Source: Amoebophrya sp. A120 (lineage: Eukaryota > Protista > Dinoflagellata). Taken from it: DNA of 64,000 bases. Under the pieces are notes generated by a model. The model was not told the origin of the DNA and searched no databases. It was given only the letters and a program-made list of their open reading frames with translations. The stretch spans positions 1,336,513-1,400,512 of the forward strand of contig CAJINV010000015.1 of NCBI GenBank assembly GCA_905178155.1. Reading direction: 5' to 3'. A program made the translations under genes and the position numbers. Shown here piece by piece: positions 10,054 to 38,666 of this stretch. Every line of letters starts with the position of its first letter. The first letter of the stretch is position 1.

Positions 10054-10225
10054 CTTTATTTCTTGCATGTCTAGCTTGGTGCACATTTACATTGATGTGA
10101 TGACACGAATGTGGACTACTGGCCACGCGAGAAACGATCGTCGAGCCCGCCGACGGGATACCAGCTTCGCAACGCAGACCGGAAGGCGTTTCGCACGTCG
10201 AATCCAAACACCACGGGGGAGGGCC
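10054..10225 (-). repeat. Split direct repeat B2 of element 1
   Basis: Near-identical to 17072-17243 (CTTTATTTCTTGCRTGTCTAGCTTGG...CACGGGGGAGGGCC). Confidence 0.92.
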
Positions 10226-10523
10226 GCTCTGCACACCCTCTCTGCACAAACGCCTGAAAGCTAACGAAGCTATCCCTTCTGCGGGAACGAGATCTGAGTG
10301 AGCGCCGCGATAGAACCAGAAAAGCCTGACTATCGGCACTCTATAGTCCACCTCCGTATCACCACACCGAACCACACGAACAGAGATCACCCGAGCTGCA
10401 GCTGCTGATGCTGCTACGTACTGTACACCTGTCCGCACATCGTGCTGTCAGCACATGTAACTGCACCCATTTTTTTAATAGACTCTACACAAAAATACTA
10501 ATGCACGTGTCGCGATCCAATGT

Positions 10524-12836
10524 CTAAAAATCCACTTCTTCATCTGAAGAGCGATCACCAGTACGACCTTCTTCTTGCATTACTTGCCAGGCTGCCAAGG
10601 CATCGGCCAAGTGTGACACGCCTGGGGACACATCAACTACTAACAGTTTTTTATAATAATCATCCATCCCAAAGCCATCAACAATTTCATCAAATAAATT
10701 CGGAAACAGCTTCAACAAAATTGACATTTTTTCGTCCCTGGTAGGATAATCAGCAAGATTGAAGTGCGTAGGGACGCGGGTGTTCCACGGCTTCATATCA
10801 CCTTCCGCCGCAATCGACCAAAGTTCCGCTGTAAGCCGTGTGAACACCCACTTTTGCTCCTTGCTACTTTTGCCTTGTGCTAACAAATTTTGCTGAGCAC
10901 AAGTATTATCTATGGCGTGATCAAACCTCCTCCCCTGCAGCTCCTTGAAAAAGTACCGCAATGCCAGGGGGGCAACAGCTGTTTCCAACACATTGATCGG
11001 GTACAGGCGGTAGGAGGAGTGTAGTTGTGCTGCTGTACACTGCTGTCGGACACACCTGAACCGCCCATCTTTCACCAGGACCGCCGCCAAAACTCCCTTC
11101 CGATCGCTCCACTGTGCGTCGGTGTAGAGCAGCAGGTTGCTCGAAGTCGCATCTTCAAACTGCGCACTGCGCTTGAGCGGCAAGCTCATCACATGCTTGA
11201 TGGCGTACAACGCGTTCTTCACATCTTCACACACCGCGACTTCTTCCCGTGCCAGATGCAGCCTTAACGGCTTCATGATCGGGCTTAAAGACCTATCTGC
11301 CACCGCAGCCAAGGAGAAGGTCAATCGGCCTAGCAACGCGTCGGTGGTGGTCATGTCCAAAATCAACGTGTTTATCGCAACATCACAAACCTGCACAATT
11401 TGCATCTTCTTTTGCTCGGTCAGCTGCACAGTAGGATGATCTCCTCTAACATCAAAAAGCAATCCCAATATTTCTAAAAACGCGTCCACGTTGATTTTGT
11501 CCGTCATCGCCGGCAATCCCAACATCTGCAGCAGTTCCAGGAGCACATCGCGGACCAACTCGCCTAATCCTCGCAACACAAAATTCGGGAAATCATCCAC
11601 ATAATCCTCCGAGTTGATCCCGTAGTGCTTCCTGAGCACACTCCGCAGCAGTTTCCCCGGCCTGCACCAGCCCGTGACGGAGTGTCTGCTGCCAAAGATG
11701 GCAGACACTCCCACGAAGTAAAAATACTTCCGCAGCTCGGGGTGGAAGACGAGGATGGTGTTGTAACAACGATGTTCCGGCTTCACCATCATGTTGTTGT
11801 AACACCTTGCAATGTCGAGCAAAACGACGTCGAGCTCGTTTTTTACAACATTCATGGCACGCCGGAATTTCCTGCTCGACATTTCCTCGTCCACGCTGGC
11901 AAACGCCGCCTTATCCGCAAACGCTGGCTGCTTTGCTCCTGGTTTTAACAACTCCTCACTGAGCTTCTCCTGCTGTCCGGACACGTATCTGAGAAATTCT
12001 TTCTCATACTGTTTTTCCTGCTTCCTGCTCCTCTGCAGTACTTTGCGATTGTGTCGGACAATTTTTTTACCAGCGCAGGAGGGGTCGCGCGCCACTGCCG
12101 CGCTCGCCAAAACGTCGAGTGCCGACGGTATTGGCACTCGACACGGCAGTGGCGAACACTGGTTCGCACTGCACGCCGGGTCTATCAGCCGGACTTTTTT
12201 CGCCTGGTGCCGTGGAAATCTCCGCATGCCATAATAAATGGCTTCTCGCGCAGACTTGTTGGTGCGGATATCATCTGGAACTTCATGTGGGCCGTCTAAA
12301 AGCGCGTATCCCAGTTCGGGCAACACCGCCGTCTCTTTGACGGACTTCTCCCAGACGAGACGAGTATCGTCTTCCGACCACGCCGGTTTTGCATGCGCTC
12401 CTTCTAGCACTTTGGCGACGATTTTACTGGGTTTAAAAGCGCTGGGGTCGTCGCACATGCGGTCCTTCCTTGCTCTCGGACTCCATGTCGGATCCACCTG
12501 GCGCTCTCCAATCATGGAGAGGCCATGAAGCCACACGCGCCACGCGCAGGGATCGCTGCCGTGGTATCTCTGCCCCAAGAGCTCCCACAAGCCAAGCTTC
12601 TGACAAGTCTTGGGCTTGTTGATCCTGCTGTCGATCTGCGAGAAAAGGTCTGCTGATCTCGACGCCGTTTCCTCGTGCCACCTCTTCATCTCCGCATGTG
12701 CACGCTTTATTTTGTCTTCCGACATCTGCGCCGGGTCGGGTAGTTGTTGGGCCACATCAAAGGGGTGTTCGCGCAGCATGTCGAACTCCACCCTTTTCAT
12801 AACCTTATGAACATCGAGTGCCGTGGGCAGCGGCAT
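10524..12836 (-). CDS. Reverse transcriptase / RNase H (DIRS-like pol)
   Basis: RT motifs LLDIARCYN, AIFGSRHS and EDYVDDFP; RNase H motifs LLYTDA, INVLETA, AIDNT and NLADYPTR. The MPLPT start is shared with copy 2. Confidence 0.93.
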   Translation of the reverse strand: MPLPTALDVHKVMKRVEFDMLREHPFDVAQQLPDPAQMSEDKIKRAHAEMKRWHEETASRSADLFSQIDSRINKPKTCQKLGLWELLGQRYHGSDPCAWRVWLHGLSMIGERQVDPTWSPRARKDRMCDDPSAFKPSKIVAKVLEGAHAKPAWSEDDTRLVWEKSVKETAVLPELGYALLDGPHEVPDDIRTNKSAREAIYYGMRRFPRHQAKKVRLIDPACSANQCSPLPCRVPIPSALDVLASAAVARDPSCAGKKIVRHNRKVLQRSRKQEKQYEKEFLRYVSGQQEKLSEELLKPGAKQPAFADKAAFASVDEEMSSRKFRRAMNVVKNELDVVLLDIARCYNNMMVKPEHRCYNTILVFHPELRKYFYFVGVSAIFGSRHSVTGWCRPGKLLRSVLRKHYGINSEDYVDDFPNFVLRGLGELVRDVLLELLQMLGLPAMTDKINVDAFLEILGLLFDVRGDHPTVQLTEQKKMQIVQVCDVAINTLILDMTTTDALLGRLTFSLAAVADRSLSPIMKPLRLHLAREEVAVCEDVKNALYAIKHVMSLPLKRSAQFEDATSSNLLLYTDAQWSDRKGVLAAVLVKDGRFRCVRQQCTAAQLHSSYRLYPINVLETAVAPLALRYFFKELQGRRFDHAIDNTCAQQNLLAQGKSSKEQKWVFTRLTAELWSIAAEGDMKPWNTRVPTHFNLADYPTRDEKMSILLKLFPNLFDEIVDGFGMDDYYKKLLVVDVSPGVSHLADALAAWQVMQEEGRTGDRSSDEEVDF

Positions 12837-13678
12837 ACTGTTTTCTTTTTCCTCAAGTGACGCGAGTATCGATTTCAATCAGATCAGACGTAGAAAGACT
12901 CGGCGACTTCACTTCAACTCTACTCTGTGCACCAACACACTCAGTCTTTGCATGTGAAACAAGTGGCATGCGATGATCTACTTTAGTCTTACACTTTGAT
13001 GAGAATAAACGATGACTAGCTGCTACTTTGTGTGAGTAACTTCAATTCTTTGCACACTACTTCTCTGCCCCCAATGCGTACGACTTGCAAATGCTGCGCT
13101 TGCGCGACTTTTGAACGATTTGCGACAGTGCTTCCTTGACTCTGGCCAGCTACACGACTTCCATTTACAACCGACGTTCAAGCTTGACTGCTACTTTGTA
13201 CACAGCAACCGACGCTCTTGAGGACGTTCACGACGACTGCGTTGCACTTTGGCCACATGGGCAGCAATCTTTCTTGCTGGGGACACACACATATCTGCAG
13301 CTCCTAGCTGCAACTACAAGTTCGCACTTGCGCTCACATTTTTAAAAACAAATATGTATCTTCCGTTGCTGTGCATTTCCAACAGTAAGTTTGTACATGA
13401 CGCTAACAAATTGCTCTGTCATTTATTTTCCAGTATTGACAAATCAACGTCAATCGTCATAAACTATACTGTTGCCAGGTCACGTCACTGGATAAAAAAT
13501 CAGAAAAATGAATTTTTGATAAACAAATCAGTGCACAGCAGCCCGAAAAAACCATGTATAAGTACTCTCATGGAGAGTTAATTACTTTCTAATTTTTATT
13601 TTCATTTTTTGAAACGACATTAGCGGACGCTGCTGTGCACTGTACATTTGAAAAACTCATAAAAGGCAAGAATCACAT

Positions 13679-14989
13679 TCACACCGCGGCAGCCTCAGCC
13701 ACCGGCTTGCACCACGACTCGTACTCAATGTCCTTGAGCTTGTCGCTAAACGCGGACTGCAAGTTCTTCCACTCGTTCGGGCTCATGTCGCCCGCCGCCG
13801 CGTGGCGAAACCTGCACTCGCTACCGAACTTGCACGAACCCTTGTTCTTGAGAAAGTCGTGGCACCACTTGGCGTTGCCCTTCTTGCCTTTTTTGCCGTT
13901 TTTACCCTTACCTGAAGGAATCGTTACACATGCATGACTACCGTTTCAACTTCATGTCTGAACATATGCATGAAAAACAACTGCAAAGACTGTCTCATGA
14001 CACCACATTGATACCTACCTTTGTTGTTTTTTCCACCACTCTGATAGGGCCCATACGAGTCCCTGAGGTTGGACATTTCTTCCCGCATAGCGGCACGCTC
14101 CTCTGCGATCAAAGAGCGGGCTTCGGCCGTAGCCTCCGCCGACGCCTCACGCAGGTTCTTCAAACGCTGTAATTCTTCACCCCAGACCTTGTTGAAACGA
14201 TTTTCGGCAAAAAAGGTTCTCATACGGCCTTCGAAGGTAGTGCCGGGCTGGGAACTGTCGGGGGTCCACTGCTCCGTCTTGTAGACGATGGTCCCCAACG
14301 CCCTGATGGCGGTCTCCTCGGAGATCGTGGTCTTGGCCAACATGAGCTGACTGATGATCTGGCTACGCCTGTCGACCGTAATCAAGGGGTCGCGGTCCCT
14401 ATGGACCTTGGCCGCCATGGCCGCCAGCAACGCGTTGACCGAGAAAGGGAGGTCCTTGTTGACCTTGGCGGTACCATCCTCCTGAGTCAGCAGCTTCTTG
14501 AGCTCCTTCATCGTTTTACCTGATAATGAACGATTTGCCCAATTGCATTTCCATGATTGCCACATGTTTTTACACTTGCGCAAATAACTTTGCATACCAA
14601 TTATGCATGCACAACAAATGATCTATACCACTTTCCCACAACGCACGGGCGTTGATGACCTTGGCACACTTGGTGAAGTCGGCCTGGGTGGGCCGTAACT
14701 CGGGGACGTCGAGCGACAAGTTCTGGAAACTCTGCTCGATCTGATTGTCTTGTCCGACAATGAAGTCGGTCAACTCCCTGTTGGCAGCACCCGCTGTGAT
14801 GTGATTTTTTCCATATCGGAAAACGCAACATGCATGTCACATGGACTTCTCATCAGCTCTTACTCATTTTGAAAGAAACATACTACACGCATGCATCATG
14901 GCTGCATGAACTCAAACAACAAAGAAAACTATCATACCCTGGGCAACCGCAGCCGCCTGCTGCTGTTGGTTAACGTTGACATTGGCCAT
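13679..14989 (-). CDS. Spliced gag-like protein with C-terminal CCCH zinc finger (4 exons)
   Basis: Exons 14989-14938, 14793-14629, 14519-14019 and 13911-13679 joined by three phase-1 GT..AG introns. The product ends ...GKKGKKGNAKWCHDFLKNKGSCKFGSECRFRHA...YESWCKPVAEAAAV*, homologous exon by exon to 21141-22649. Confidence 0.8.
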
Positions 14990-15310
14990 TTTTTTTTACG
15001 AAGTGCTAAAAGCTACTTCAACAGAGTTTTGATATCCTCAGAGGTGTAAACGGACTTTTCCTACGGGTGTGCGTTTTTTTTTTTAATTGAAGCTCAACTG
15101 TAACGCAACGAAAACCAATGACGCACTGTGACTTGAAATCGTGGCACTTTGATCCTCGGCGGAACCTTTACTGTGCATTTTGCTGAACACGCGGGTGACA
15201 GGTGTGGAGACTTTCTTGGCGCAAGCTGTGCATTCCTATTTTTCTATGCTCTTCACATGCTCTTAAACAAAAAGCCAGCATCTTCATGCACTTCATCATT
15301 TTGCGTAACC

Positions 15311-16861
15311 TTAAATGCCGCAGAAGTTCAGAGGGACAAACATGTTCCGACTCACATACGGGATAGATCTTATGTAATACATCAGCATTTGCATGTTAGC
15401 CCAGCACACTATCACGCTTCACACTTGCGCTGCTAGCTTCACATATCTGCACTCTTATTTTTCCATTTTTCCATCACAATCTCCACACAAAAGCCTCAAG
15501 CTGGCATCGCAAGAGCTGCACATCATAGGGCAATGCACGATGACACGAACTGGATCGATCTTCATCAGGTACAGATGCGTAGCACTTCCTATCCTCCAAC
15601 TATGGCTTGCGGCATCTTTTTCATGCGGAAACGTGCGCTTCATTATCTTAGCAATGTCCAAGTCTTCTCTGCACAGATGTGGCAACACACTTTTGAACTT
15701 GCAAACACAGAACTCTGGCGGGTACTTGATGCGCTTCAACTGCTCACAAATGCAAGTGACCCTTACCATGGCGCACTTGTTAACTTTGGTAGAGGCTTCC
15801 TGAAAGTTTAGTAACAAGTCTCCATTAACATCATATCGTAAAGAGATGAGACCTGTGTCGCCTGTGTTCTTCACGTCCAGCAAAAAGGCTTCGCTTTTCC
15901 TCAATGCTGCATAAAAAGCCAAGAGCAGAGCCACCGCCTCTTGATACAACAATTTACTGCACACCCACATCTGGTAGATATGCATTATCGTCATGGGAGA
16001 CTTCTGCTTTTTCCTGCCTAGAAAGCCTCTACGAACCAGTGTAGAGAGTTCCTTCATCACGTTTTCTTTTTCTGTACCGGATAACCTGCAGCGCTCGTCC
16101 GCCAAAACATCCTTCACAGCCGGCTGTATGCTTGCATACCCGGCGGCCATACTCGTCCCCACAAACGCCCGCACTGATGGATACGACCACAGGTGGTACG
16201 GGAGATTCTGCGCCACTTTTTCATACCGTCTAATCCGTGAAGCACGATTGTCATCGGCTTTTTTTGTGGAGGACATCTGGTCCAACTCCGACATCGCCGA
16301 CTGTAGTAACATGGGGTCCTTGGCGATATCCAACGCCAGAGCCAGCTTGCTCTGCGCTGTCCGCCCCTCCGCCTCCGTACGGGCGTTGAACACTGCGTCG
16401 ATACTGGCTTGCGCCGTCACCATCTGCTTGACGAACACGTCCTTGGGGACGTCGAGCACGTTGCTACGCTGAAACGGATCATCTTTCCGTCTACACCTGA
16501 TGCTGTCGAGCACTGGCTCCCCGTTTTTGTACTGTATGCTGAGCCGTAACTGGGAAAGCGTGTTGCTCATCTGCACTGCCTGTGCCTGGTTCAAAATCAT
16601 CACTCCCTTACTGGTGGGCGTCGGTACTCGTTCTTGCAACTGCTCGCGCGTGAACGTACTGGCAGGAAGCTCTCCTGCACTCGCAAGTAGCTGCGCTGGC
16701 AACCTGGTGCCGCTAGCTGCACAGTCTCGTATGGCTTTCGCTGCCACCCTTTCTCCGAAGGCTTTTTTCATGCTATCGACCGACCGTAGGTTGTCTGCTG
16801 CCTGCGCTTCCAACTCTGCCTTCATCGAGGCATCGAAATCATCTTCACTTTCTGACAACAT
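15311..16861 (-). CDS. Tyrosine recombinase interrupted by a 123-bp insert (15406-15528)
   Basis: ALRKSE (catalytic R) and HSWRIG (HxxR). IVHC|RWANMQMLMYYIRS is restored only after removing 15406-15528; collinear with copy 2 YR. Confidence 0.88.
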
Positions 16862-16887
16862 GGCGTGGGTGGGTGGGCAAGAAAAAG

Positions 16888-17243
16888 CCACCAGCTACGC
16901 GAGCTGGAGTTCTTCGAGGTCCTGCTACCCTTGAGCTATATCTATTTGTATGTATACAGGCGCGTGACGCGCAAATACCGCTCGCGTTCAGCGCTCGTAC
17001 TGGACTACACTCAGATGCACCGGCATGGTCCTGCCGAAATAAAGGCGGCGGGCTCGTCCCTTGCCGCTCTACTTTATTTCTTGCGTGTCTAGCTTGGTGT
17101 ACATTTACATTGATGTGATGACACGAATGTGGACTACTGGCCACGCGAGAAACGATCGTCGAGCCCGCCGACGGGATACCAGCTTCGCAACGCAGACCGG
17201 AAGGCGTTTCGCACGTCGAATCCAAACACCACGGGGGAGGGCC
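16888..17243 (-). repeat. Internal B1-A2 junction repeat of element 1
   Basis: 16888-17072 matches 17888-18072 and 17073-17243 matches 10055-10225; the two abut, reproducing the joined element ends. Confidence 0.92.
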
Positions 17244-17887
17244 TTTCGCCACCTACGCTCGACCACGAGGAGAGGGCGCCGACTGAGGCGCATCTGGAAC
17301 TCCCCCACCCCGCTCGACGACGCGAGCGTCTCGAAGACCTACAGCGACGCATGCTGGTGCCGCGTTTTGACATCCTACTACTCGCTCATCGTGAGCTGCA
17401 CACAACACTGGCTGCGGCGCCTTAGCAAGCATATCTGATGCCCGCTTTCGACAACAACAGGCACGCAGCACTGCCTCTCGACGAGTCGATAAGCAGCGCC
17501 ACGCGCGCAACCTGGTGCTAACAGCGAAGCAAGCTTCACCGTCAGAACCGTCACACGAGTGGGGGCGCACCACCGGAGAGGTGATCCTCGCCTGGGCGAG
17601 AAGCTACCGACTCCCCGAGGGCAGCGCTGACGCCATATGCTCTGCAGCCACTGCATCGGCCTGCATCCACCTAGGACGCTGCAACACGCATTCGCACCTG
17701 TGCACACTTCGCACTAAACCGCACTTCTCTACCTGGCTACCTGCCTGCGCACTGTGCTGCCACACTTGTGGACCAGCCTCAGCCACAACCTAGCCTCCGT
17801 CAGCTGTGCTACCATGGAGCGACACCGGAGACTAGCGCCTGCAGTGGGCACGGACGGTGAGACCGCGAAACCAAGAAAAAAAAAAAA

Positions 17888-18072
17888 CCACCAGCTACGC
17901 GAGCTGGAGTTCTTCGAGGTCCTGCTACCCTTGAGCTATATCTATTTGTATGCATACAGGCGCGCGGCGCGCAAATACCGCCCGCGTTCAGCGCTCGCAC
18001 TGGACTACACTCAGACGCACCGGCATGGTCCTGCCGAAATAAAGGCGGCGGGCTCGTCCCTCGCCGCTCTAC
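17888..18072 (-). repeat. Split direct repeat A1 of element 1
   Basis: Near-identical to 16888-17072 (CCACCAGCTACGCGAGC...GCCGCTCTAC). Confidence 0.92.
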
Positions 18073-18252
18073 ACGTGTAAAATTTTTGCAAGTTTTTAAA
18101 ATTTTAAAAAATGCAGAGTTTTACTGTAAATCAGTCGGATCTGCCTTAGCGGATCAAGAGTCTAAGTGAAGCCATTCAGTTTCTGCGGAAAGTCGCAAGC
18201 TTTTATATGATTTTGGAGGTTTGGCACAATTCTAGCAAGATTGCCTTTTTCA

Positions 18253-18416
18253 AATACAGCGGCGAGGGACGAGCCCGCAGCTTCTTTTGTCGCTTTCAAG
18301 TGACACCGATGCCATCGCAGATGCGTTAGAAGTCGTGCGCGCACGCGCGCTATAGTTTTGTAGTAGCTACGGGTAGCTGGGCCTCCGAGCTTGCGCCTCG
18401 TTGGCGTATTTTCTTT
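18253..18416 (+). repeat. Split direct repeat A1 of element 2
   Basis: AATACAGCGGCGAGGGACGAGCCCGC...GGCGTATTTTCTTT is repeated at 19294-19457. Confidence 0.92.
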
Positions 18417-19128
18417 GGCCTCACGGAATTCACCATCCGTGCCCACAGCAGGTGCCGCGTCTTCCAGTAGTAGGAAGGCGCGGTGGCAGTGTTTTGCCGC
18501 GTGGCAAACTGCCGTCGTCCTGTGTCTTGCACGTGAGTGCAAGCAGGCGCGCGTCCTGTGTCTTGTCGCGTAGGCAAGCAGGCTGCTCACGGTGCTCGTG
18601 TGAGCCGTTGTCGATTGTGCTGCACGCAGATGCAAATGTAGGTGCCCAGTCAGGGTGGTGCAGGTTAGCATAGCCGCTGTAGGCATGCGCCTGCACATGC
18701 GTGTGTCTAGTTGCCCAGGCCGTGTGAGAGCCGGGAGTGGTGTGCCAGTAGAGCACCGTGCTGGCTGCCAGTCGGCGTCTGCGCTGCTGTTCGGCGGGCC
18801 GGTCGTTCTCTACTCCGGTAGGGATCACCCCGTTGGCAGTGCGCACCGTGCGGCTGCGTTTGTCTCCAGGCGCTGTTTCTCTCACGAGGAACAGCGCCTC
18901 GAGGCGCTGTTGGACAGGCTCGCCTGCACAGCAGCGCTTCGCGTCGATACATGTCCACAGGACGAAGTTCCTGGACGCCGGCAGTCTGCGAAGGTCATTG
19001 TGGTACGGCAAAGCAATGCCGCCGTAAGTCGTGCGTTCCTCGGGTGCCCTCGACGTCGAGCGCCAGTGGGAGGTCTTTGTATGTGCCTCGGTCGGCGCCC
19101 TCTCCTGTCGAGAGCGGTGTTGGCAAAA

Positions 19129-19457
19129 GGGGCCTCCCGGTTTCGTATCGAGCGTGCGCTCGATCCAGGCGTCAGCAGCTCGTTGTCTCTGCGCAGCGTC
19201 CGCGCAGGCGCTCGTCGAGTTCGTGGGACCAGACGGTAGCTGTACACCAGTGCACCAAAGTGTAAGAGAGTAAAAGAAGAAAGACGAGAAAAGAATACAG
19301 CGGCGAGGGACGAGCCCGCAGCTTCTTTTGTCGCTTTCAAGTGACACCGATGTCATCACAGATGCGTTAGAAGTCGTGCGCGCACACGCGCTATAGTTTT
19401 GTAGTAGCTACGGGTAGCTGGGCCTCGGAACTTACGCCTCGTTGGCGTATTTTCTTT
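19129..19457 (+). repeat. Internal B1-A2 junction repeat of element 2
   Basis: GGGGCCTCCCGGTTTCG...GACGAGAAAAG (matching 25920-26084) is followed directly by A2. Confidence 0.92.
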
Positions 19458-19480
19458 TCCCACCCGCCCACGCCAAGAAA

Positions 19481-20911
19481 ATGGTCGACTCAGGCTCGGA
19501 AGATGACTTCTGGCAGGAGCTCAAAGGTGAAATGAAAGAGCAAGCCGAGGAAAACTGCAGTACGTACGAGAATATGCAGAGGGCTTTTGGTGCCAAAGTA
19601 GCGGAAAAAGCCGCGCGGCAGTGTGCAGAAGCCGGTGTAAAGTTGCCGAATTCGCTGTTGCGGGAGTCAAAGTCACTTCCGGCGAATCTGTTCACGCATG
19701 AACAAGTCAGCGAGCCGTGTGTACCGTGTGAAGCTCGTGGTGTACTGCAAGGAACGCAGGCGCAGATGTTACGGCTGGTTGCCAACGTGTCGCGGTTGAA
19801 GATTGTGCAGAGAACGCACCCGGACGGCAAAGTGGAGCTGCAGTGCTTTAGGAAGCACGACAACCCGTTCGCGAGGTCGGACAGCACGGACGTGTCCAAG
19901 GAGTTGTGTACGGCAAGATTAGTGGAGGGACAAAGCACGCTGGATGCAGTCTTTGCGGCTAGAACGGAGCAGGAAAAAAGTAGTGCGCGGAGCAAACTGC
20001 AGATGGCGCTGGACATCGCGCGCGACCCGCATCTGTTGCAGGAAGCGCTGTTGGACTACGAGGACAAAACCTCCACGGAAAAAGCCGACGCCAACAGGCA
20101 GTCCAGGATTAGTCGCTACATCAAGATCGCGGAGTATCTTCCCAAAAATTGCAAACCTTGGACTTTCCCAAGTGTTAGAATGTTTATAGGAGCCAGCCTA
20201 GCGGCTGGCTACCTGAGTATTAAGCCCGCTGGTGTTGATGTACTGAATCATCCGAGTTGCGTGTTGTCTGACGCAGAAAAAGACACAATTCACAGAGAAC
20301 TTGCATCACTAGCACGCAGAGGATTTTTGGGAAGAAAGCGACAGAAATCACCGTTAACCATCGCGCATATTCTCACCTACTGGAAGTTGCAGAAGCTATC
20401 GCACAAGCAAGTAGTTGTGTTACTACTCTGCTTCTATGGAGCGTTACGCAAGTCAGAATGTGCAAAGTTAGATGTCAAATTTACAGGTCAAAAAGGATTG
20501 ATATCCATGAAATACAAAGAGAGCGATTTAGTTTTTAACTTCCAAGAAGCGAGCGCCAAAGTAAACACGTGCTCGCTCGTCAGAGTGCGTTGTGTGTGTG
20601 CAGAACTGCAGAAAATAAATTATCCAGAGTGGTTTTGTGTGTGCAGACTCAAAAGCATCATTCCGCAGCTGTGTGAAGATGATTTAAATGTGGCAAAAGT
20701 CATGAAGTCCGTTTTTGAAAAAGAAGAGCATGTGGCTAGCCATTCATGGCGGATCGGGTGCGCCACACACCTGTACTTGGCAAAACTGGATCCAGTAAGA
20801 TGCATTGTGCACTGCCGTTGGGCCAACTTACAAATGCTCCTCTATTATATTAGAAGTGCGCCACATGTATCGCGGTCTATGTTTGTGGACTTAATGTTTG
20901 CTGGTGTGTAG
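19481..20911 (+). CDS. Tyrosine recombinase
   Basis: ALRKSE, HSWRIG and HCRWANLQMLLYYIR give the R-HxxR-H/W-Y catalytic set; uninterrupted. Confidence 0.92.
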   Translation: MVDSGSEDDFWQELKGEMKEQAEENCSTYENMQRAFGAKVAEKAARQCAEAGVKLPNSLLRESKSLPANLFTHEQVSEPCVPCEARGVLQGTQAQMLRLVANVSRLKIVQRTHPDGKVELQCFRKHDNPFARSDSTDVSKELCTARLVEGQSTLDAVFAARTEQEKSSARSKLQMALDIARDPHLLQEALLDYEDKTSTEKADANRQSRISRYIKIAEYLPKNCKPWTFPSVRMFIGASLAAGYLSIKPAGVDVLNHPSCVLSDAEKDTIHRELASLARRGFLGRKRQKSPLTIAHILTYWKLQKLSHKQVVVLLLCFYGALRKSECAKLDVKFTGQKGLISMKYKESDLVFNFQEASAKVNTCSLVRVRCVCAELQKINYPEWFCVCRLKSIIPQLCEDDLNVAKVMKSVFEKEEHVASHSWRIGCATHLYLAKLDPVRCIVHCRWANLQMLLYYIRSAPHVSRSMFVDLMFAGV

Positions 20912-21140
20912 TAGTGTAAAAGCACAGATGTAAAAGGAAAAAAACCAAATCGCCTGCAATGGCTGCTCCTCCATGTTATTTGTGTAGATGCGTGTGTTCA
21001 AAACTGTTACCGTCACGTTCAAACATGACTGATCCGAGATCAAGCTTTCATTGCGTGTAAAAATGTGAATCACTTCCAAAAAAACCCGTAGATTCGTCCT
21101 TTCCCTTTACTGAGTTTAGAAAAAGTTTTCGTCGTCGAAG

Positions 21141-22649
21141 ATGGCTGATGCAGGAGCAGCACCCGCGGCAGCTGCCGCCGCAGCGGCTGGTGCAGTTGGC
21201 TAAGTCCACACTTGCTCATGCGCACTCACATGCACATTACGTCCAAGGTTGAAATCTGTGTCAAATGCATGTGAATTTCTGTCCAAAAATCACTACGCAG
21301 GTGTTGCCGCAGCCGGCGCGATGCCGGCTGCGGAGGGACGGCGCCTGGTCGATTTTATCGCCGGGCAAGATGAGCAGGTCGCCACCAGTCTGCAGAACAT
21401 TGTCCCGCCGATGCCGGAGTTACGGCCCGCCAAAGAGCCCTTCAAGAAAGCGGCGCAGTCGTGCAACGAGCGTAACTTGTGGGAGAAAGGTGCGTGTTGG
21501 TTTTCCGTTGCAAAAATGTGTGTGCAATGAAGTGATGATATGCATTTCCCATGCATAACTGCATCTACAACTCGTATAAAACACGATAAAAATGCACACG
21601 TCAGGTCATGTTCTGAAGACCGGGAAAGCCGTCGGTGGCGATGAGCCAGCCAAGTTGCCGCTCTCCGTGCCGAGCCTCCTCTTCGCCATGGCGGCCAAGT
21701 GTCATCGTGACCGTGAACCCATCCTGACTACCGCAAGAAGAGACTCCATGTTAAGCAGTTACATGTTGTGCAAGACGTCCCTGTCCGCTGAGGCAGCGGA
21801 CAAAGTGTTCGGTGCCATTTTGGCTAAGACCGAAACCATCACCAGTGATGAAACCCAAGCGGGCACGACCTACGAGGGTCGCATGCGTCTCTACTTCGCG
21901 GAAGCCAGGTTTGCCAGGATGTGGCAGGAGGAGGTCGGTAAGCAGCGCGGCATCATCGAGCAGACCCATGAAGTCACTGCCGCGGCCAAGAAGGACATCG
22001 GTGAGGCGATGAAAAAGGTGAACGATGCGCAGGAGCAGCTGAACAAGCAGCAGCAGCAGCAGCAGCAGCAGAGCAGCTGGCATGGTCAGCCCTACGGAAA
22101 ACAGTCCAAGGGCGGAGGAAAGAAAGGTAGGTATTGTATGTGCAGATATGACTGTTACAAAAGCATTTGTGTTGTATTTGAAGTGGCATAGATGATGATC
22201 GATTCAGGCGCTAGTGCGGCATGTTCTCCCCGGCACGCGCTCTTTATGTAACTGACCTAGTGGCCTTCCCAGCCGTGGAGACGTTGCAAATTTGTTTCTC
22301 TTCTTGCTGACATTTGCCACATGTAAATCTGATTTCCGTCAGGAAGTTCACATTGATGTCGCGACACAAATGCGCATAGAATTGGAATATCATTGCTCTA
22401 TCAGGTAAAAAGGGCAAGGGCAAGAACACGACAAGTCCGTTGTGCTTCGAGTTCATGACCAACAAAGGTGCGTGCAGTTGGGGAAGCGAGTGCGCCTACC
22501 GCCACCCCAAGAAGAACGAGATCTCCACCGATGAGTGCAACAAGTTGAAAGAAGGAAAGCAGGGGTGGAAGTTCAAAAATGTAGCCTATGAGTCATGGTG
22601 CCCGGAAGTCCCGGCTGCGGCTCCGGCCACTCCGGCGGCTACGGCGTAG
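21141..22649 (+). CDS. Spliced gag-like protein with C-terminal CCCH zinc finger (4 exons)
   Basis: Exons 21141-21189 (or 21198 with a GC donor), 21301-21489, 21605-22126 and 22405-22649; all introns phase 1 and ending CAG. Ends ...GKKGKGKNTTSPLCFEFMTNKGACSWGSECAYRHP...YESWCP... Confidence 0.8.
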
Positions 22650-23372
22650 ATGCTGCGTCGACTGTCGTGTTATGTTTTTTTTGTGAGCGCACAGCAGTCT
22701 TCACCACTGTTTGCAAAACGAAAAATGTCCATGTCGCTGTTAAATAATTTTGAGAATAAATGAAAAAATTAGAAATTCAATATCTTGGTGGAGGCTGCTG
22801 TGCGTATCGTTCAACATTTGTTTCGATTTTTTACCTTGCAACAAGGTTCGCTTCACACATGCACTCACGTTTACACATTGGACAGTAATTTTTCAAGATT
22901 GATGATTGTGGAACCTAGCTCAACAGAATGAGCCTCATGAATGTGAGTTGACATGAAGTCGATTTTGAACACGAGTTTCATCTTCAAATTCACCGTGGTT
23001 AGCATCGCGTCGAGCCAGTAGCCATTTGGCACTTTCCAGTCTGCATTGCGTGTTCGAAACCTGTAGAAAGCTGCGCGGCATTGTCGTATGTCGTGAATGC
23101 AGAGAAAATCTACATTCTGTCGGTGCTAGTCGGTCTGAAATACGCGCAAATGCAGCATTAGCAGTGCAAAGAGTCTTTCAGCAATGTCGTGACATAGCTT
23201 CGCACAAGGTCGGTGTGTGCAAAAGTGCAGTACAAATTGGCAAGTCAGCGATCGGTATATCTGGGGCAAATGCAAATCGCAAATGTAACACATGCAAAGC
23301 GGCCATCTTATGTTCTCATTGTAAGTTACCACACGTGATTACTTGTCTCCGCTGCATAGATGTAGTGTTAAG

Positions 23373-25658
23373 ATGCCGTTGCCTACCGAGGCTGACGTAC
23401 ATAATGTACTGAAACGGGTCGAGTGCGACTCTATTCGTGAGCATCCGTTTGATACCGTGCAACACTTACCTAACCCGGCCAATTTATCTCGTGAATCACT
23501 CACACAGCAGCACAACTTAGTAAAAAAATGGTCAGAAGAGACTCGTGAGCGATCAAGCGCAATCTTTGCGTCCATCGACGAGGAGATCAGGAAGCCGCAG
23601 GTGTGTAAGCACCTGGGCTTATGGGAGCTGCTTGGTGCGAAGTATCATTGCACAGACCCGCTCGCATGGACAGTGTGGCGCGACGGGCTGGCAATGATAG
23701 GGAGATGCGAGGTAGACGAGTCCTGGTCACCGCGGAAAAAGCGGGACAAAATGAACGGCCGCGAAGAGGATTTTGTTCCTAGCAAGGTGGTGCAGGACAT
23801 CCTCGATGGGAGACACAAAAAACCGGCGTGGTCCGACGAGTTGATCAAATTCACCTGGGACAGGTGTCTGGAGGAGACGAAAATTGTGCCGGAGCTTGGG
23901 TGCGAGCTCCTAAGAGGGCCGCACCCAATTGCGGAGGACATTGTGACCAATGAGGAGGAAAGGATGAAAATCTACTACGGGTGCAGACGGTTCCCGCGTG
24001 TGCAGCCGAAGAAAATCAGAATGATCGACCCGGCGGTTTCTGCAAACGCCTGTTCACCGCTGGATAAGCGTGTGCCGATTCCTGGGGCTTTGGACGTGCT
24101 CGCAAATGCAGCAGCGGCGCGCGATCCTTCCGTTTGCGGTATGAAGATTGTGAAGCACAACAAGCGGATACTCCAAAAATGTAGAGGTGCAGAAAAACGG
24201 TACGAAGCCCAATTTGTGAAGATTGTGAAGAAGGAATTGCGGCAAATGGATGCGGATTTGATAAAAGAGTGCGCAGTACAGCCGAAGTACGAGGAGAAGC
24301 CAGTGTTCAGCAGTGAAGGGCTATCCAACAGGAAGAAGCGGAGGTTAGAGAACACGGCTCTCAACGAGTTGGAGTGCGTCTTGTTGGACATCGCGAAATG
24401 TTACAACAGCCTGATGGTTAAAGTCCAGCACCGGAAGTACAACACGGTGCTCGCGTACAACCCCGAGGTGGGCAGGTACTTCCGCTTCGAAGCTGTGTCT
24501 GCCATCTTCGGCAGCAGACACAGCGTCACCGGCTGGTGCCGGCCGGGCAAGCTGCTGCGGTCGGTGTTGAGGAAACATTATTTCCTCAACTCGGAGGATT
24601 ACGTGGACGACTACCCCAATTGGGTGCCCAAGGGGCTCGGCGGCCTGGTCCGCGACTACTTGCTCGAGCTCCTGAAGCTACTGGGGCTTCCGGCGATGAA
24701 CGATAAGATACAAGTCGCCGACCTCCTGGAGGTGTTGGGACTCCTTTTTGATGTTCGCGGCGACAAGCCGACTGTTGCTGTCACCGAGCAGAAAAAAGCG
24801 CAGATCATCGCCACCTGCGATGCTGCGTTGTCCACGCTCTGGCTGGATGAACCCACGGCAAACGAATTGGTGGGGCGACTGACGTTTGCGCTAGCCGCGG
24901 TGGCGGATCGGGCCCTAAGCCCGCTGCTGAAGCCCATCCGCAGGCACCTCTCGAAGCAGGAGACGGCAGTAACGCAGGCGGTGGCCAGCGCGTTGCACGC
25001 GGTCAAGGAAGTAATGAAGCTTCCGCTCAAAAGGAGCGTGTCCTTCGAGCCGACTTCCAGCAAAAGCGCCTTGCTCTACACCGACGCACAATGGTCAAAT
25101 AAAAAAGGTGTTTTGGCTGCTGTGTACGTCGAAAGTGGCGTGTTCAAGTGCGTGCGGCAGCACGTGTGGGCAGACCTGCTGCGCCCGGACTTCGCGTTGT
25201 TTCCGATTAACGTCTTGGAAACCGCCGTGGCACCGCTTGCCCTGATGTACTTCGCCAAGGATCTGGCGGGCAAGCGGTTCGACCACGCCATTGATAACAC
25301 CTGCGCGCAGGAGAGTCTCCTGGCGCAGGGGAAAAGCGGGAAGCAGAAGTGGGTGTTTACTAGGTTGTGCGCGGAGTTTTGGACCATCTCCGCCATGCAC
25401 GACATGAAGCCGTGGAACACCCGGGTGCCGTCAGATTACAATCTGGCGGACTACCCGACCCGGGATGAAAAAATGGATGTGTTGTTGCGTGTGTTTCCTA
25501 GTCTTTTTTCAGAAATCAGTGAGTCTTTCCACATGGATACATATTTCAAGAAGATTCTCAAAGGAGATGTGTCGCAAAATGTGCATAAGCTCGCGTGTGT
25601 GTTGGCCGGTGACGAAGACACGGACCCTGGTGTGTCATCTGATGATGATCTTGTGTAG
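23373..25658 (+). CDS. Reverse transcriptase / RNase H (DIRS-like pol)
   Basis: LLDIAKCYN, AIFGSRHS, EDYVDDYP; LLYTDA, INVLETA, AIDNT, NLADYPTR. Confidence 0.93.
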   Translation: MPLPTEADVHNVLKRVECDSIREHPFDTVQHLPNPANLSRESLTQQHNLVKKWSEETRERSSAIFASIDEEIRKPQVCKHLGLWELLGAKYHCTDPLAWTVWRDGLAMIGRCEVDESWSPRKKRDKMNGREEDFVPSKVVQDILDGRHKKPAWSDELIKFTWDRCLEETKIVPELGCELLRGPHPIAEDIVTNEEERMKIYYGCRRFPRVQPKKIRMIDPAVSANACSPLDKRVPIPGALDVLANAAAARDPSVCGMKIVKHNKRILQKCRGAEKRYEAQFVKIVKKELRQMDADLIKECAVQPKYEEKPVFSSEGLSNRKKRRLENTALNELECVLLDIAKCYNSLMVKVQHRKYNTVLAYNPEVGRYFRFEAVSAIFGSRHSVTGWCRPGKLLRSVLRKHYFLNSEDYVDDYPNWVPKGLGGLVRDYLLELLKLLGLPAMNDKIQVADLLEVLGLLFDVRGDKPTVAVTEQKKAQIIATCDAALSTLWLDEPTANELVGRLTFALAAVADRALSPLLKPIRRHLSKQETAVTQAVASALHAVKEVMKLPLKRSVSFEPTSSKSALLYTDAQWSNKKGVLAAVYVESGVFKCVRQHVWADLLRPDFALFPINVLETAVAPLALMYFAKDLAGKRFDHAIDNTCAQESLLAQGKSGKQKWVFTRLCAEFWTISAMHDMKPWNTRVPSDYNLADYPTRDEKMDVLLRVFPSLFSEISESFHMDTYFKKILKGDVSQNVHKLACVLAGDEDTDPGVSSDDDLV

Positions 25659-25919
25659 AATGTGACTCATCTCTCTGTTTTTTTTGTGAAAAAATGTGGC
25701 TTACATGTGAACGCAGTGTGCTAGTTATCTCAGGTCTGTTTGCACAGGTTGCTTGTGACTCAAGGTCAGTGGTGGTTGGTGTCGATACTACCGCTTTGCG
25801 CGCCGATAGCATGTTCTATCGCGGTGCACTACTTCGACGTGCTTGTGCGGTTCTGCGTTGTGACATCGTCTGTGACGCCTTTGTGCTTTCGCGTGTTGCA
25901 TCCGTGGTTGTGTTGGAGC

Positions 25920-26086
25920 GGGGCCTCCCGGTTTCGTATCGAGCGTGCGCTCGATCCAGGCGTCAGCAGCTCGCTGTCTCTGCGCAGCGTCCGCGCAGGC
26001 GCTCGTCGAGTTCGTGGGACCAGACGGTAGTTGTACACCAGTACACCAAAGTGTAAGAGAGTAAAAGAAGAAAGACGAGAAAAGAA
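25920..26086 (+). repeat. Split direct repeat B2 of element 2
   Basis: Near-identical to 19129-19295. Confidence 0.92.
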
Positions 26087-28986
26087 ATTTTGGAAATTCC
26101 GAAGAATCGTACATGTATGCGCGTAGCTGCTGCGTGTTTGCTTTGAACGAATAACGCAAGTAATAAGTGTGCACAGATTTGCGCGAGCTTTTATATATTT
26201 TCACGGATTTTTGGCCATCTTTTGCATTCTCCTCATTTTTGAAATTTTTGGGATTTTGGAAAATCGAGCCCAGATGTCTTCGATGTGATCTTATGAGGGT
26301 TAGCGGATAAAAAGAGCATGCAAAATCATGAAAAACAAGCGCAATTGCCGCTATTTCTGGCCGGATCCTCCCGCCCGGGCACCGCAGTCGTCGTCGGCGA
26401 GGCCCGCGGATCTCTAGGCTTTTGGGAAAGCGGGCCAGATGCTGCAAGTTTGGCGCCAATGGGCCCCCACCAGCGACAAAGGCTGTGAGACGCCGTACGC
26501 AGGCCGCCCGGTGAAGCACTTTGGCCCGGGGCCCGGCAGCGTAGTCGCGTTCGCCCAGGTGGTCGGCTTTTGGGCTTTTTTAAAGATTTCCGCTGTCCTT
26601 GCCCGGGCCGCCCTTCTCGTCGGTCCATGCTCGCCCGCAGACACGGTTTCCGGCGGTGCTATTTTTGAAAGTTTGCCTGTGCAACGCATTCTGTAATCGG
26701 CCGCCTGCAATACAAAAGGGGGCCATAGCTACGGAATATGGCTCCGTAGCGCTATTTTTAAGCGGGACCCGGAGCCGAGACAGGATGGCCCTCGCACGCG
26801 GCCGTTCCGGATTCTCGGGGTTTTTAGGAACTAGGCTTGGGACAACATCCCGTGGGGCTTTAATCGGGCCCCGCTGCGGAAACGGGTCGGCAGGGTCTGC
26901 GACTTTTCATGGGGTCCGGGAGCCGGGGTGGCGCCGCACTTCCCGCGCGCGCCGCGGCTGCGAATTTCCAGGCCTTTCAAAAGCGATGCCGGATGCGGCC
27001 AAGCCGGTGCGCGTGCTATCTCAGCAACCCGCACGCCCCGCAGTGCCCGCTTGGCCAGTAATGGAATAAAGTGCGAAGCCTGGAGCCGCGGCGGCAGCCG
27101 GTTTGGGTACCTGCTTGGCCTTGGCGGCCGCGGATGTCCGAAACGGTACCCGCTCGCATGTAGGGGCGCGGGTTTTGGGTGGAGCTTTAATAAGCTCCAG
27201 CCGACAAGGCGGCCGGCCTTAATCAGCTCCCGCCAATGGTGACAAGAGGGCGCAGATGCACGAGCGGGGCGCCCCACGGCGCTATTTTCCGCCGCTCCTC
27301 GCGCCGGACCCGGCCGGGCCCGGCACGGCTAGCTGTTTGGCCTTCGCGCTGGCTAGGGACGGCTTCCGGGCATTTGGTGCACGGTTAGCAGCGGAGACCC
27401 ACATGGCCGCGGAGGGGTAACACTTACTTCAGGGGCGGGCGTGGAAGCACGTTGCCAAGCGTCCCTCCGCGGGGGGGGGGGGTGGCGCGAAAAAATTTTC
27501 CGCTCCACCCTGATTCTTTCTACCGGCGCACGCCCGGCTATTTTTCATCGTGTAGCTTTTCATAGTTCCAACCTCTTCATCTCATGCGATCTACCGCACG
27601 GCCGGCGTTATCGGTTTTGTGCCGGAGTAGATTGAAAGCCGTTTCCTGTGCTCGTCCAAGATAAACCAAATCGGTCGACGCTACCGGTCGGGTTGACCAC
27701 CGTTCTACTTTGCGCTGGTCGTGCAGTAAGAGAGACTAAAGCTTTTCAGCGCAGCGAGGTCCTTTTTCGGTTCGGTCACGTGTGATCGTGTCTACGAGAG
27801 CGGAGTGCGACAACTTATTACACCCGGCTCGCTTTATTTCCGTTTCAAATTTCGGTATATGTGCCAATTAGACTTTTCCTCCCCTGCGTTATCGCGTCCT
27901 GCAACAAAAAATTTTCGGTTTGATGTCGTGCAAGAACATGCTGGTGCGACAAAGGTAGCACTACATCGGTCCTGCTCGTGCGAAATGCGTCTCGGTCGTC
28001 CTCGTACAAAATTCTCGTCGGTCCAGTTTTTCGTCCGAAAAAACTCGTACAACCTCGGCGCTACGCGTTTCTCGTCCGAAAGAAAGTTTGCAACTCGTCA
28101 TTTTTGCATGCGCAGTACGGTAATTTACTAGTTTTCTCCAACCCCTTGCTCACGATCCGCACTGCTGGACAAAAGGCAAAAATTTAATTATACCGACGAC
28201 AACAACAGGAAGGCGCTCCTACCTCGACAAACCATAATTGAAGACGACTGATTATACCGTTCACCGAAAACTCTACCTTGTTTATCATTTTTCCCCTCCC
28301 CTTTAATTTCCTTCCAACATCGATTTCTGATTTTCCCAGCTCGGCGGAGCAAAAATCCGGAATTTCAATCTTTCACGGTGACACTCTGTCCGCGGAAGAA
28401 CGTTATTGTACTATACGGTCGTGTAGCAATTTGAAAATAACACTGCGGGCGGCAGTGGATCACTTTTGTACTTGATTTATCTTCCGCGTGACTAAGGCTA
28501 CGGCGTGTTTCTATTTAAGCATTTTCCTTTTCTTCGACGGCTTGATTGATTTAATTGTTTGAACAGCTAAAGAGTTTTTTCTATTTCCGAGACCCGTACT
28601 GTAACGTCTCCAAGCGGTGGTCTATCCGTGCGGAGCAGAAGGCCAACAACTGTCTCGAGCATTTCCAGACAAGCGAATTTTTAACTACAACCGGAGCCAA
28701 ATTCATTTCTCTTCGTTTCTCCTCCCCGGAGCGGCCGTTGAGAATTGGTGAAATCGCTTTCAGAATTAACGAAAAGAACATCACGACATCTAACGAACAC
28801 GAAACTAAACGAACACCTAACGACAGAATTCTTTTTTACCCCCGTGTGCTGGTCCTATTTGTGTAAAATAAAACCAAGAAGTGCTGTTGTATTGTAACCC
28901 GCGGTGGTTGTACTAGTTGGAGAAAAACTAAGACAAGAAGACAAGCAGGTCGCGACGCTGGGAACAACAACACGGAGAAGTGGATC

Positions 28987-38292: not shown

Positions 38293-38554
38293 TATCAAAT
38301 GCAAGAATTTCTGGGGCTGGAAGAGTGCAAGACTTGTCATGCATATTTTGAATGGCCAATGAGGTTTGGGACGCAGATCCTAGCATGACAGATTCTGCGA
38401 GGTCTCCATCATGCCTATCCTGCATAGGAAACGTCTTCTCAACTTGGTCGAAAGTGGACAGCTTTTGGTCATCATGCAACACAGATTTTTGCATGATTCT
38501 GAGTGACCACGGCAAGTTCCACTTTTCCAGCCCAAGACATATTTGCATTTGATA
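38293..38554. mobile_element. TIR introner, family A
   Basis: TSD TTCCA. Confidence 0.9.
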
Positions 38555-38666
38555 TTCCAAGACCTCGCGCAACTCCAAGACGCGAAGGACGGCGCGAGCC
38601 GGAAATTGCCGCCGTTTCGGTTCACGAATAGGCAGGTTTCAGGGTCAGACCAGGCGAGTAGTGTGC

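Follow-up and report, generated by a model that had tools for sequence, protein, structure and literature searches.

Tyrosine-recombinase retrotransposons with a conserved, intron-bearing gag-like gene in Amoebophrya sp. A120

We found that elements A and B, two intact, divergent tyrosine-recombinase (DIRS/Ngaro-type) retrotransposons, lie head to head and 180 bp apart in the window, the whole 64,000-nt stretch of contig CAJINV010000015.1 analysed here, and belong to a family that has kept introns in its gag-like gene. Intron loss is the textbook signature of passage via spliced RNA and the basis of the standard retrotransposition assay, DIRS-1 included; in this family, three to four introns in coding regions have persisted through transposition and deep divergence, and further introns are gained. 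Our results support a copied template that carries the introns, and an unspliced sense RNA is better supported as that template than an antisense RNA. Taken whole, the account of a sense-template tyrosine-recombinase retrotransposon family with retained gag introns is our best explanation, and we give it about an even chance of being correct.

Organization of the elements and their proteins

In the sense of their open reading frames, A and B both run from an outer repeat P1 (A1) through a leader and an internal junction Q1|P2 (B1A2) to the tyrosine recombinase (YR), gag-like and reverse transcriptase (RT)/RNase H genes and a closing outer repeat Q2 (B2) (Table 1). The leader is structured and non-coding; a coding reading was rejected, as its conservation is at the nucleotide level, in every frame and on both strands. 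A genome search returned 14 copies representing 13 lineages, all with one layout and gene order, and every copy (14/14) had split direct repeats and no target-site duplication. A and B are thus members of one tyrosine-recombinase retrotransposon family of the DIRS order, with a putative RNA intermediate. Repeats within an element were 95-100% identical across copies (100% in two copies), while their variable parts could not be aligned between lineages. Element ends show the conserved core at the P start, with A-rich microhomology at the left flank, and at the internal junction of B the core has covarying inverted arms on both sides (AAAAGAA / TTCTTTT).

Table 1. Features of elements A and B, in window coordinates
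Feature	Position	Strand	Remarks
Element A, whole	10054..18072	-	8.0 kb; split direct repeats; similarity to C6 copy stops at both ends
A outer repeat P1 (A1)	17882..18072	-	starts with conserved core GGCGAGGGACGAG; 95.8% identical to P2
A non-coding leader (spacer)	17244..17881	-	holds covarying helices
A leader helices	H1/H1b 17836-17867; H2 17276-17291	-	covariation
A leader mid helix	17468-17475 with 17620-17627	-	covariation
A internal junction	16882..17243	-	Q1 (17072-17243), P2 (16882-17072)
A tyrosine recombinase gene	15311..16861	-	interrupted by non-coding insertion
A gag-like CCCH gene	13679..14989	-	four exons, three introns
A gag exons	14989-14938, 14793-14629, 14519-14019, 13911-13679	-	
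A gag introns	14937-14794, 14628-14520, 14018-13912	-	144, 109 and 107 nt
A RT/RNase H gene	10524..12836	-	no intron
A tail hairpin	10300..10341	-	covarying; between RT stop and Q2
A outer repeat Q2 (B2)	10054..10225	-	A-rich end; 98.8% identical to Q1
Element B, whole	18253..26086	+	7.8 kb; repeats and ends
B outer repeat P1 (A1)	18253..18425	+	94-96% identical to P2 (19294-19466)
B non-coding leader	18426..19128	+	holds covarying helices
B leader helices	H1/H1b 18422-18454; H2 19083-19098	+	covariation
B leader mid helix	18781-18788 with 18930-18937	+	covariation
B additional leader helix	18795-18798 with 18829-18832	+	covariation
B internal junction	19129..19466	+	Q1 (19129-19295), P2 (19294-19466)
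B tyrosine recombinase gene	19481..20911	+	no intron
B gag-like CCCH gene	21141..22649	+	four exons, three introns
B gag exons	21141-21189, 21301-21489, 21605-22126, 22405-22649	+	
B gag introns	21190-21300, 21490-21604, 22127-22404	+	111, 115 and 278 nt
B long-range covarying helix	22688-22694 with 22798-22804 (22688..22804)	+	directly 3' of gag stop
B RT/RNase H gene	23373..25658	+	no intron
B tail hairpin	25798..25829	+	covarying
B outer repeat Q2 (B2)	25920..26086	+	98% identical to Q1

The RT/RNase H product is a reverse transcriptase, given its YVDD motif, matches to RVT_1 in 4/10 relatives (best E 2.5e-05) and predicted fold: with the AlphaFold model of the B product (pLDDT 77.7), the best Foldseek matches were the RTs of CaMV, MMLV, HIV-1 and Ty3 (probability 1.00, best E 2.6e-10). 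Putative RNase H motifs were conserved (DAS...E...D(N)...N.AD.PTR), alignments to HIV-1 p66 spanned ~480-510 columns, and the Pfam RNase H profile was unmatched. The open reading frame ends ~60 aa past these motifs, with no methyltransferase domain after RNase H by Pfam; Pfam likewise found no GIY-YIG endonuclease in any open reading frame, and the RT fold was nearest to those of LTR elements and retroviruses. The recombinase matched Phage_integrase in 5/8 family members, spanning profile positions 10-169 of 172, with a best E of 8.7e-05 that falls below Pfam's cut-off. With invariant R323, H421-x-x-R424 and H444 (R...HxxR...H) and a Tyr-Tyr downstream, the product is a tyrosine recombinase, in place of a DDE integrase. 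PDB sequence searches with the RT and YR profiles gave no match. Between IVH(C) and WANMQ, the YR gene of A is interrupted by a non-coding insertion of ~123-127 nt (at about 15404-15531) that is not GT-AG and can be read as a GC-AG intron in phase 1.

The remaining gene is called gag-like solely on the basis of its position and its zinc finger, a CCCH finger matched by Pfam in B (E 0.001) and not the CCHC knuckle of retroviral-type Gag. Its exon-3 domain is predicted to fold into a small helical bundle with a long helix, and a fold search of the PDB returned no match, a capsid fold included.

The overall plan comes closest to that of Ngaro/PAT-like elements with split direct repeats. In common with Ngaro, PAT-like elements and VIPER are the RT (with putative RNase H), tyrosine recombinase and gag-like reading frames, the A1...B1A2...B2 repeats and the lack of target duplication, and, as in Ngaro and VIPER, there is no methyltransferase. 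Canonically, the plan reads A1-[gag, RT/RH, YR]-B1A2B2 (PMC8547959), A1 being at the 5' end and B1, A2 and B2 at the 3' end (PMC6681497). Unlike in Ngaro, all genes of every copy follow the B1A2 junction, which itself comes after a leader of 0.6-0.8 kb, the gene order is YR-gag-RT/RH and the gag introns are conserved, while the methyltransferase after RNase H that characterizes PAT-like and DIRS1-like elements is missing. SymbioDIRS elements of Symbiodinium share a dinoflagellate host and YR and RT reading frames with A/B repeats, and their reading frame order is reported to be shuffled between families (PMC5890265); by description, they have an A-coding region-B-A-B plan, intronless genes and a DNMT domain, whereas the family described here has introns, lacks a DNMT and places the junction ahead of the genes. 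This family widens the range of layouts known for split-direct-repeat elements, which is relevant to transposon annotation pipelines built on the assumption that reading frames are intronless and precede the B1A2 junction.

Retention of the gag introns

The original prediction of three phase-1 introns at equivalent positions in both copies was confirmed at the same junctions, with all six introns of A and B being GT-AG and in phase 1. One follows the Ala-rich exon 1, the next follows LWE[S/K]G and the third interrupts the Gly/Lys-rich stretch ahead of the CCCH finger; all three are required for an open, alignable gag product in A and B, as read-through leads to stops or a change of frame. For intron 1 of B, an in-phase GC donor 9 nt downstream is equally possible. 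Across lineages, the ATG context of intron 1 is conserved, its donors are GT or GC, and a branch-like motif, TCACTAC, is conserved ahead of CAG|G; in 12/13 lineages the same codon is interrupted by intron 2, which is in phase 1, 99-173 nt long and bounded by G|GT...YAG|G. Conservation of intron positions and signals in gag exceeds chance. The accompanying claim of conserved exons around unrelated introns also held: between B and its nearest relative, nucleotide identity was 67-88% for gag exons and 44-56% for gag introns, the latter at the level of shuffled sequence (40-51%).

The gag gene was split at equivalent places in all 13 lineages with detectable gag, and exon-by-exon searches of the genome with exons 2, 3 and 4 matched only the loci of these copies, revealing no intronless or solo gag; the prediction's question of whether all genomic copies retain the introns is thus answered in the affirmative. 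Some lineages carry additional, lineage-specific introns in gag or YR, one of them introner-like with terminal inverted repeats. More than 60% of host introns are non-canonical, and introners have spread in the host.

Element A shares 97.95% identity across 8013 bp with its C6 copy on another contig, and this similarity stops exactly at the element ends, beyond which the flanks are unrelated. We therefore consider this a bona fide transposition that kept every intron. Together with the split gag of all lineages, it indicates that the copied template was unspliced, in agreement with what had been proposed from the sequence. That the copies are no longer mobile, being a dispersed family of host genes or segmental duplicates with the look of transposons, would match the low copy number, deep divergence and host-like introns; this is highly improbable, given the sharp ends and unrelated flanks, the fully identical repeats of two copies, the three-gene module with repeats in every copy and the occurrence of relatives in Amoebophrya sp. 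AT5.2.

Movement as DNA would make the retained introns trivial, with no special explanation necessary. Here the recombinase would excise the element and reinsert it in a Crypton-like manner, and RT/RNase H would be vestigial or serve another role. Such mobility is compatible with the single copy found in 12/13 lineages, with P1/P2 differences that were inherited and not erased, and with the lack of target duplication and a junction resembling a recombination site. However, nearly all lineages have an intact RT/RNase H with its catalytic motifs, and dN/dS between A and the C6 copy (RT 0.53, YR 0.28) shows that both genes are under purifying selection. The contrast between near-identical repeats within elements and variable repeat parts that defy alignment between lineages fits template-guided restoration of ends, the coexistence of A and C6 means that a copy was gained, and leader and tail contain conserved single-strand structures. 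We regard DNA-level mobility as unlikely.

Polarity of the copied RNA

Antisense RNA had been put forward as the template: a transcript that starts in Q2 on the opposite strand and ends in P1, with proteins made from separate sense mRNAs. Such an RNA could not be spliced at the sense introns, as would suit the loss of conserved introns in 0/13 lineages, unlike in DIRS-1 (PMC7192593), the gain of lineage-specific introns (the introner-like one included) and an intron content of element genes approaching that of host genes (host density 1.42 per kb, PMC7789003). The proposal had also drawn on a PAT-like pattern that appears when the opposite strand is read and equals the canonical layout A1-[body]-B1A2-(spacer)-B2 (PMC8547959, PMC6681497). 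The repeat pattern is real, but since split direct repeats are mirror-symmetric, genes in the second A...B cassette always look canonical on the other strand, and the layout is uninformative on the RNA strand. In about half of the lineages, an AATAAA lies on the antisense strand 20-30 nt from the outer P1 end, where an antisense RNA could end; however, it forms an arm of an inverted repeat covarying with the A-rich Q end, and other lineages, among them B, have AAAAGAA-type arms in its place. RT lacks introns in every copy and YR in most, which is unexpected if introns are cost-free, and we found no precedent in the literature searched.

Further evidence on polarity comes from covarying structures. 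The pseudoknot-like pair H1/H1b in the leader showed compensatory changes in 7/9 pairs (98.3% paired), and the tail hairpin in 10 of its 12 pairs (97.4% paired), with 0/500 shuffles equalling either. On the strand of the open reading frames, G·U exceeded A·C by 17:3 in five leader helices and by 13:1 in the tail, and in all well-supported helices the sense-strand G·U pairs would become A·C mismatches in antisense RNA. Leader and tail are G+T-rich on the sense strand, a bias that by itself would yield about 1.6-2 G·U per A·C, so that the corrected significance of the excess is only about 0.02-0.03 per region. This excess is what a functional sense RNA predicts, and the antisense template is not supported. 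G·T pairs would be equally tolerable in sense-polarity single-stranded cDNA, the product of an antisense RNA. An 'ambisense' retrotransposon, in which antisense RNA is reverse transcribed and the three genes are expressed from their own sense messages, would shield its genes from intron loss and leave them free to gain host-type introns and introners, with the G·T-tolerant helices acting in sense-polarity first-strand cDNA; we consider it, and with it the antisense template, unlikely.

Under the favoured reading, the reverse-transcription template would be a full-length, unspliced sense primary transcript from P1 to Q2, and only the RNA fraction used as gag mRNA would be spliced. Leader helices and tail hairpin could be cis signals of this sense RNA for packaging or RT recognition. 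Ends would be restored with the internal Q1|P2 junction as template. Insertion of a junction-bearing intermediate by the recombinase would leave no target duplication and would take place at sites that seem to have a few A-rich bases in common with the Q end. Amoebophrya has unidirectional gene clusters and spliced-leader trans-splicing (PMC7789003), and a processed multi-gene sense precursor fits such a host. In DIRS-1, a YR retrotransposon of Dictyostelium which also restores its ends from an internal junction-like region and differs in its inverted terminal repeats and ICR, the cDNA intermediate is single-stranded and an intron oriented like the element transcript was spliced out and lost from new copies of a retrotransposition assay (PMC7192593). 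Given this precedent, an ordinary sense Pol II genomic RNA is hard to square with three to four introns in 13/13 old lineages. Two P1-specific variants common to A and the C6 copy imply that the template extends far into P1, so any sense RNA starts near the outer P1 end, where no promoter evidence was found; an antisense RNA ending near there would equally be expected to pass on such variants.

Penelope-like elements resemble this family in behaviour only, as they keep introns after retrotransposition (PMC8557442) and differ in RT clade, GIY-YIG endonuclease, target-primed insertion, pLTRs and lack of a recombinase. For the sense-template reading, the coexistence of unspliced genomic RNA with spliced messages in retroviruses may offer a parallel. 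Retroviruses and some LTR retrotransposons replicate unspliced RNA and splice for expression only; retroviral splicing removes gag-pol for downstream genes, with packaging signals in the removed part, whereas the small introns of this family lie within the gag coding sequence. This family is a natural system for asking how a retroelement keeps its genomic RNA apart from its messages, and whether retroelements can be 'intronised' by intron-rich hosts.

In three raw RNA-seq runs labelled as this species, 0 reads mapped to 20600-26599, at ~3 M reads each, too few for a test; one DNA run covered this region, with the joined (spliced) form absent. Rfam had no match in 9800-26400 at E up to 1, no tRNA or primer-binding site was found, and 200 pattern matches in metagenome contigs included 0 relatives. 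The six bases that open the dinoflagellate spliced leader recur upstream of gag as a conserved CCGTAG|G, and a spliced-leader relic was rejected because matches reached at most 14-15/21 in any element, the chance level. Relatives were also found in Logan and ENA and in Amoebophrya sp. AT5.2 (locus g19498/g19499), and the A120 genome additionally holds 14 solitary core motifs and more distant RT families.

Architecture of two related retrotransposons

The window contains two complete tyrosine-recombinase (YR) retrotransposons, A and B (see table), whose 5' ends are opposed across a gap of 180 bp (18073–18252). Read in ORF sense, both consist of P1, a leader of ~640–710 nt, the junction Q1|P2, the genes, and Q2, where P1/P2 (A1, A2) and Q1/Q2 (B1, B2) are split direct repeats with 94–96% and 98–99% identity, respectively. 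We found 14 copies from 13 lineages in the 115.5-Mb genome; layout and gene order were constant in all 14, and within-element repeat identity was 95–100% across the family. P invariably starts with T(A/G)nnnGGCGAGGGACGAG, the end of Q is A-rich, the last few bases of the left flank are usually A-rich and Q-end-like, and no target duplication was found at the element ends. The Q end and P positions ~30–40 form an inverted repeat covarying between lineages around a conserved core (arms such as GAAAATAA/TTATTTTC, AAAAGAA/TTCTTTT, and CAAATAAA/TTTATTTG). These repeats and ends are hallmarks of split-direct-repeat YR retrotransposons. However, in the canonical plan, A1-[ORFs]-B1A2B2 (PMC8547959; PMC6681497), the B1A2 junction lies behind the genes, whereas here it precedes them, an arrangement we did not find for any split-direct-repeat YR element or dinoflagellate DIRS in the literature searched.

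In both elements, the first gene encodes YR (~476 aa), the second a CCCH-finger gag-like protein, and the third RT/RNase H (760–770 aa). A and B share 60% protein identity in RT and 45% in the gag exon-3 domain; they are old relatives, not duplicates. The RT ORF has YVDD and DAS...E...D...N.AD.PTR motifs; Pfam RVT_1 matched 4 of 10 relatives and neither of the window's own RT copies, and an AlphaFold model of RT (pLDDT 77.7) resembles the reverse transcriptases of CaMV, MMLV, HIV-1, and Ty3 (best E 2.6e-10). Phage_integrase matched five of eight YR members, with R...HxxR...H retained. Given that the predicted fold of the gag-like exon-3 domain, a helical bundle accompanied by one long helix, retrieved no similar solved structure, the "gag" label rests only on position and the zinc finger. 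RT and gag homologues were also found in Amoebophrya sp. AT5.2.

Elements, insertion, and other repeats located in the window
Feature	Position	Strand	Description
Element A, complete	10054–18072	minus	three genes and split repeats
Element B, complete	18253–26086	plus	three genes and split repeats
Non-coding insertion in YR	15404–15531	minus	~127 nt, without GT-AG ends; A clade, same place in three other lineages
~262-nt repeat copies	7957–8218, 30834–31096, 33529–33790, 38293–38572, 54243–54505, 54846–55107, 56885–57145, 59654–59914	both orientations across family	
Long tandem array	60295–63974		alternating 92/93-nt units
Run of 95 N in the array	63576–63670		
Short tandem repeats	6187–6627		units of 17 and 18 nt

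Introns carried through transposition

Element A and a near-identical relative on contig C6 share 97.95% identity over 8013 bp; similarity stops exactly at P1 and Q2, the flanks are unrelated, and both copies have all of the introns. With dN/dS values of 0.53 for RT and 0.28 for YR between them, both are or were working elements. Genome searches with gag exons 2, 3, and 4 separately matched family loci only, with the exons always separated, and revealed no intronless or solo gag; introns were therefore kept in all genomic copies found. Together, the A/C6 pair and the lack of intronless gag indicate that the copied template carries introns, which supports the unspliced template put forward in the original prediction. 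DIRS-1, by contrast, loses an intron oriented in sense with its transcript: the intron is removed, and new copies lack it (PMC7192593). Survival of introns through transposition is shared with Penelope-like elements, for which it has been called highly unusual (PMC8557442). In the literature searched, split-direct-repeat YR elements and dinoflagellate DIRS are said to lack introns, or introns go unmentioned.

The three gag introns proposed at matching positions in A and B were borne out: all six are GT-AG and phase 1, their junctions yield open, alignable products in both elements, and the unspliced frames meet stops. Exons were likewise conserved and introns unrelated, as had been claimed, with 67–88% exon identity and shuffled-level intron similarity between B and its nearest relative. 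Intron 1 follows an Ala-rich exon of ~16 codons with a conserved start context (AAAATGGC); its donors are GT or GC, and its 3' end (TCACTAC...CAG|G) is conserved. Intron 2, after LWExG, occurs in 12 of 13 lineages (phase-1 G|GT...YAG|G, 99–173 nt), the 13th having a longer gap at this site, and intron 3 lies in the Gly/Lys stretch ahead of the CCCH finger. Some lineages have additional interruptions in gag exon 3; RT has no intron in any copy.

Downstream of the A-clade YR insertion (see table), the exon is conserved, stop position included, and the insertion resembles the non-canonical introns of the host. Another YR insertion, of ~150 nt with GT-AG ends, occurs in a single lineage (copy L015, G000:C4:11.50 Mb); it ends in 13-nt inverted repeats (CCTAATTACATGT/ACATGTAATTAGG) with TGTG(C) duplicated at its borders, and resembles an introner or a MITE inserted into a retrotransposon gene. 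The gag of a further copy (L018/L007, G000:C2:12.69 Mb) is broken by a GC-rich foreign insert of ~1.1 kb in the last exon, past the intron-3 acceptor. Amoebophrya genomes of the A120/A25 class have >60% non-canonical introns, spreading introners, 1.42 introns per kb of CDS, and trans-spliced messages (PMC7789003), and the introns and extra interruptions of the family fit this host biology.

Structured regions and the strand of the template

Non-coding blocks conserved at the nucleotide level, with strongly covarying helices, occur in the leader, downstream of the gag stop, and in the RT–Q2 tail. Helix H1/H1b at the P1–leader border (9 pairs, 7 compensatory, 98.3% paired) and a tail hairpin (12 pairs, 10 compensatory, 97.4% paired) were each reached by 0 of 500 shuffles; the leader also has an 8-bp long-range helix, a 4-bp helix, and helix H2. 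Among half-changed pairs on the ORF strand, G·U outnumbered A·C (leader, 17:3; tail, 13:1); the G+T-rich sense strand alone predicts ~1.6–2 G·U per A·C (p then ~0.02–0.03 per region). The structured leader precedes P2 and overlaps no gene's coding region, which implies a sense transcript that starts in P1 and is selected for structure, as expected of sense genomic RNA. In 11 of 12 lineages, a conserved CCGTAG|GRA motif, equal to the start of the dinoflagellate spliced leader, precedes the gag ATG by ~70–110 nt (~21040–21060 in B). A second motif, GGGTAGCWGG, close to the 3' end of P, shares its GTAG. Both are candidate trans-splice acceptor sites; a full spliced-leader relic is absent.

We give about an even chance that the template would be an unspliced sense primary transcript. 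An antisense template, as originally proposed, is favoured by the absence of intron loss across 13 lineages and by two P1-specific variants common to A and the C6 copy, which show that the template reaches deep into P1. A further point in its favour is an AATAAA on the antisense strand, 20–30 nt away from the end of P1 in roughly half of the lineages, although it belongs to the covarying inverted repeat. The half-changed helix pairs would be mismatched in antisense RNA, but G·T pairs would be tolerated also in sense-polarity single-stranded cDNA, the product of such RNA. The opposite strand does show the canonical layout, as had been observed, but this carries no weight for antisense because A1-s-B1A2-L-B2 reverse-complemented always gives X1-L'-Y1X2-s'-Y2. 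An antisense template is neither supported nor required, and we consider it unlikely; mobility at the DNA level seems quite unlikely. Three small RNA runs contained 0 reads on B.

Genomic distribution and other repeats

Two other divergent members lie tail to tail, ~10 kb apart, on contig C13 (339–360 kb), so that with A/B, 4 of 14 copies occur in two tight pairs within a 115-Mb genome, which suggests a common target preference. A 13-nt core, GGCGAGGGACGAG, has 44 exact matches genome-wide vs. ~3–4 expected by chance, and each element has a core pair ~0.93–1.05 kb apart. The small contig C245 is probably a duplicate or haplotig, given its head-to-head core pair at the same 208-nt spacing as in A/B. 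Two more core pairs, with cores 925 nt apart (at C3:8.457 Mb and C4:2.19 Mb), as well as ~14 solitary cores, all absent from the protein-search matches, are candidate solo junctions or non-autonomous relatives. The interval G000:C13:345824–352650, lying between the C13 pair, has three cores spaced exactly 3407 nt apart and, in addition, a 2956-bp repeat with 99.7% identity; it is a tandem array containing the junction core.

Elsewhere in the window, eight sites carry ~262-nt repeats with 70–92% identity, probably an introner family. The long tandem array has a 185-nt period and copies up to 100% identical, and is interrupted by a run of N; shorter tandem repeats lie near the start of the window.
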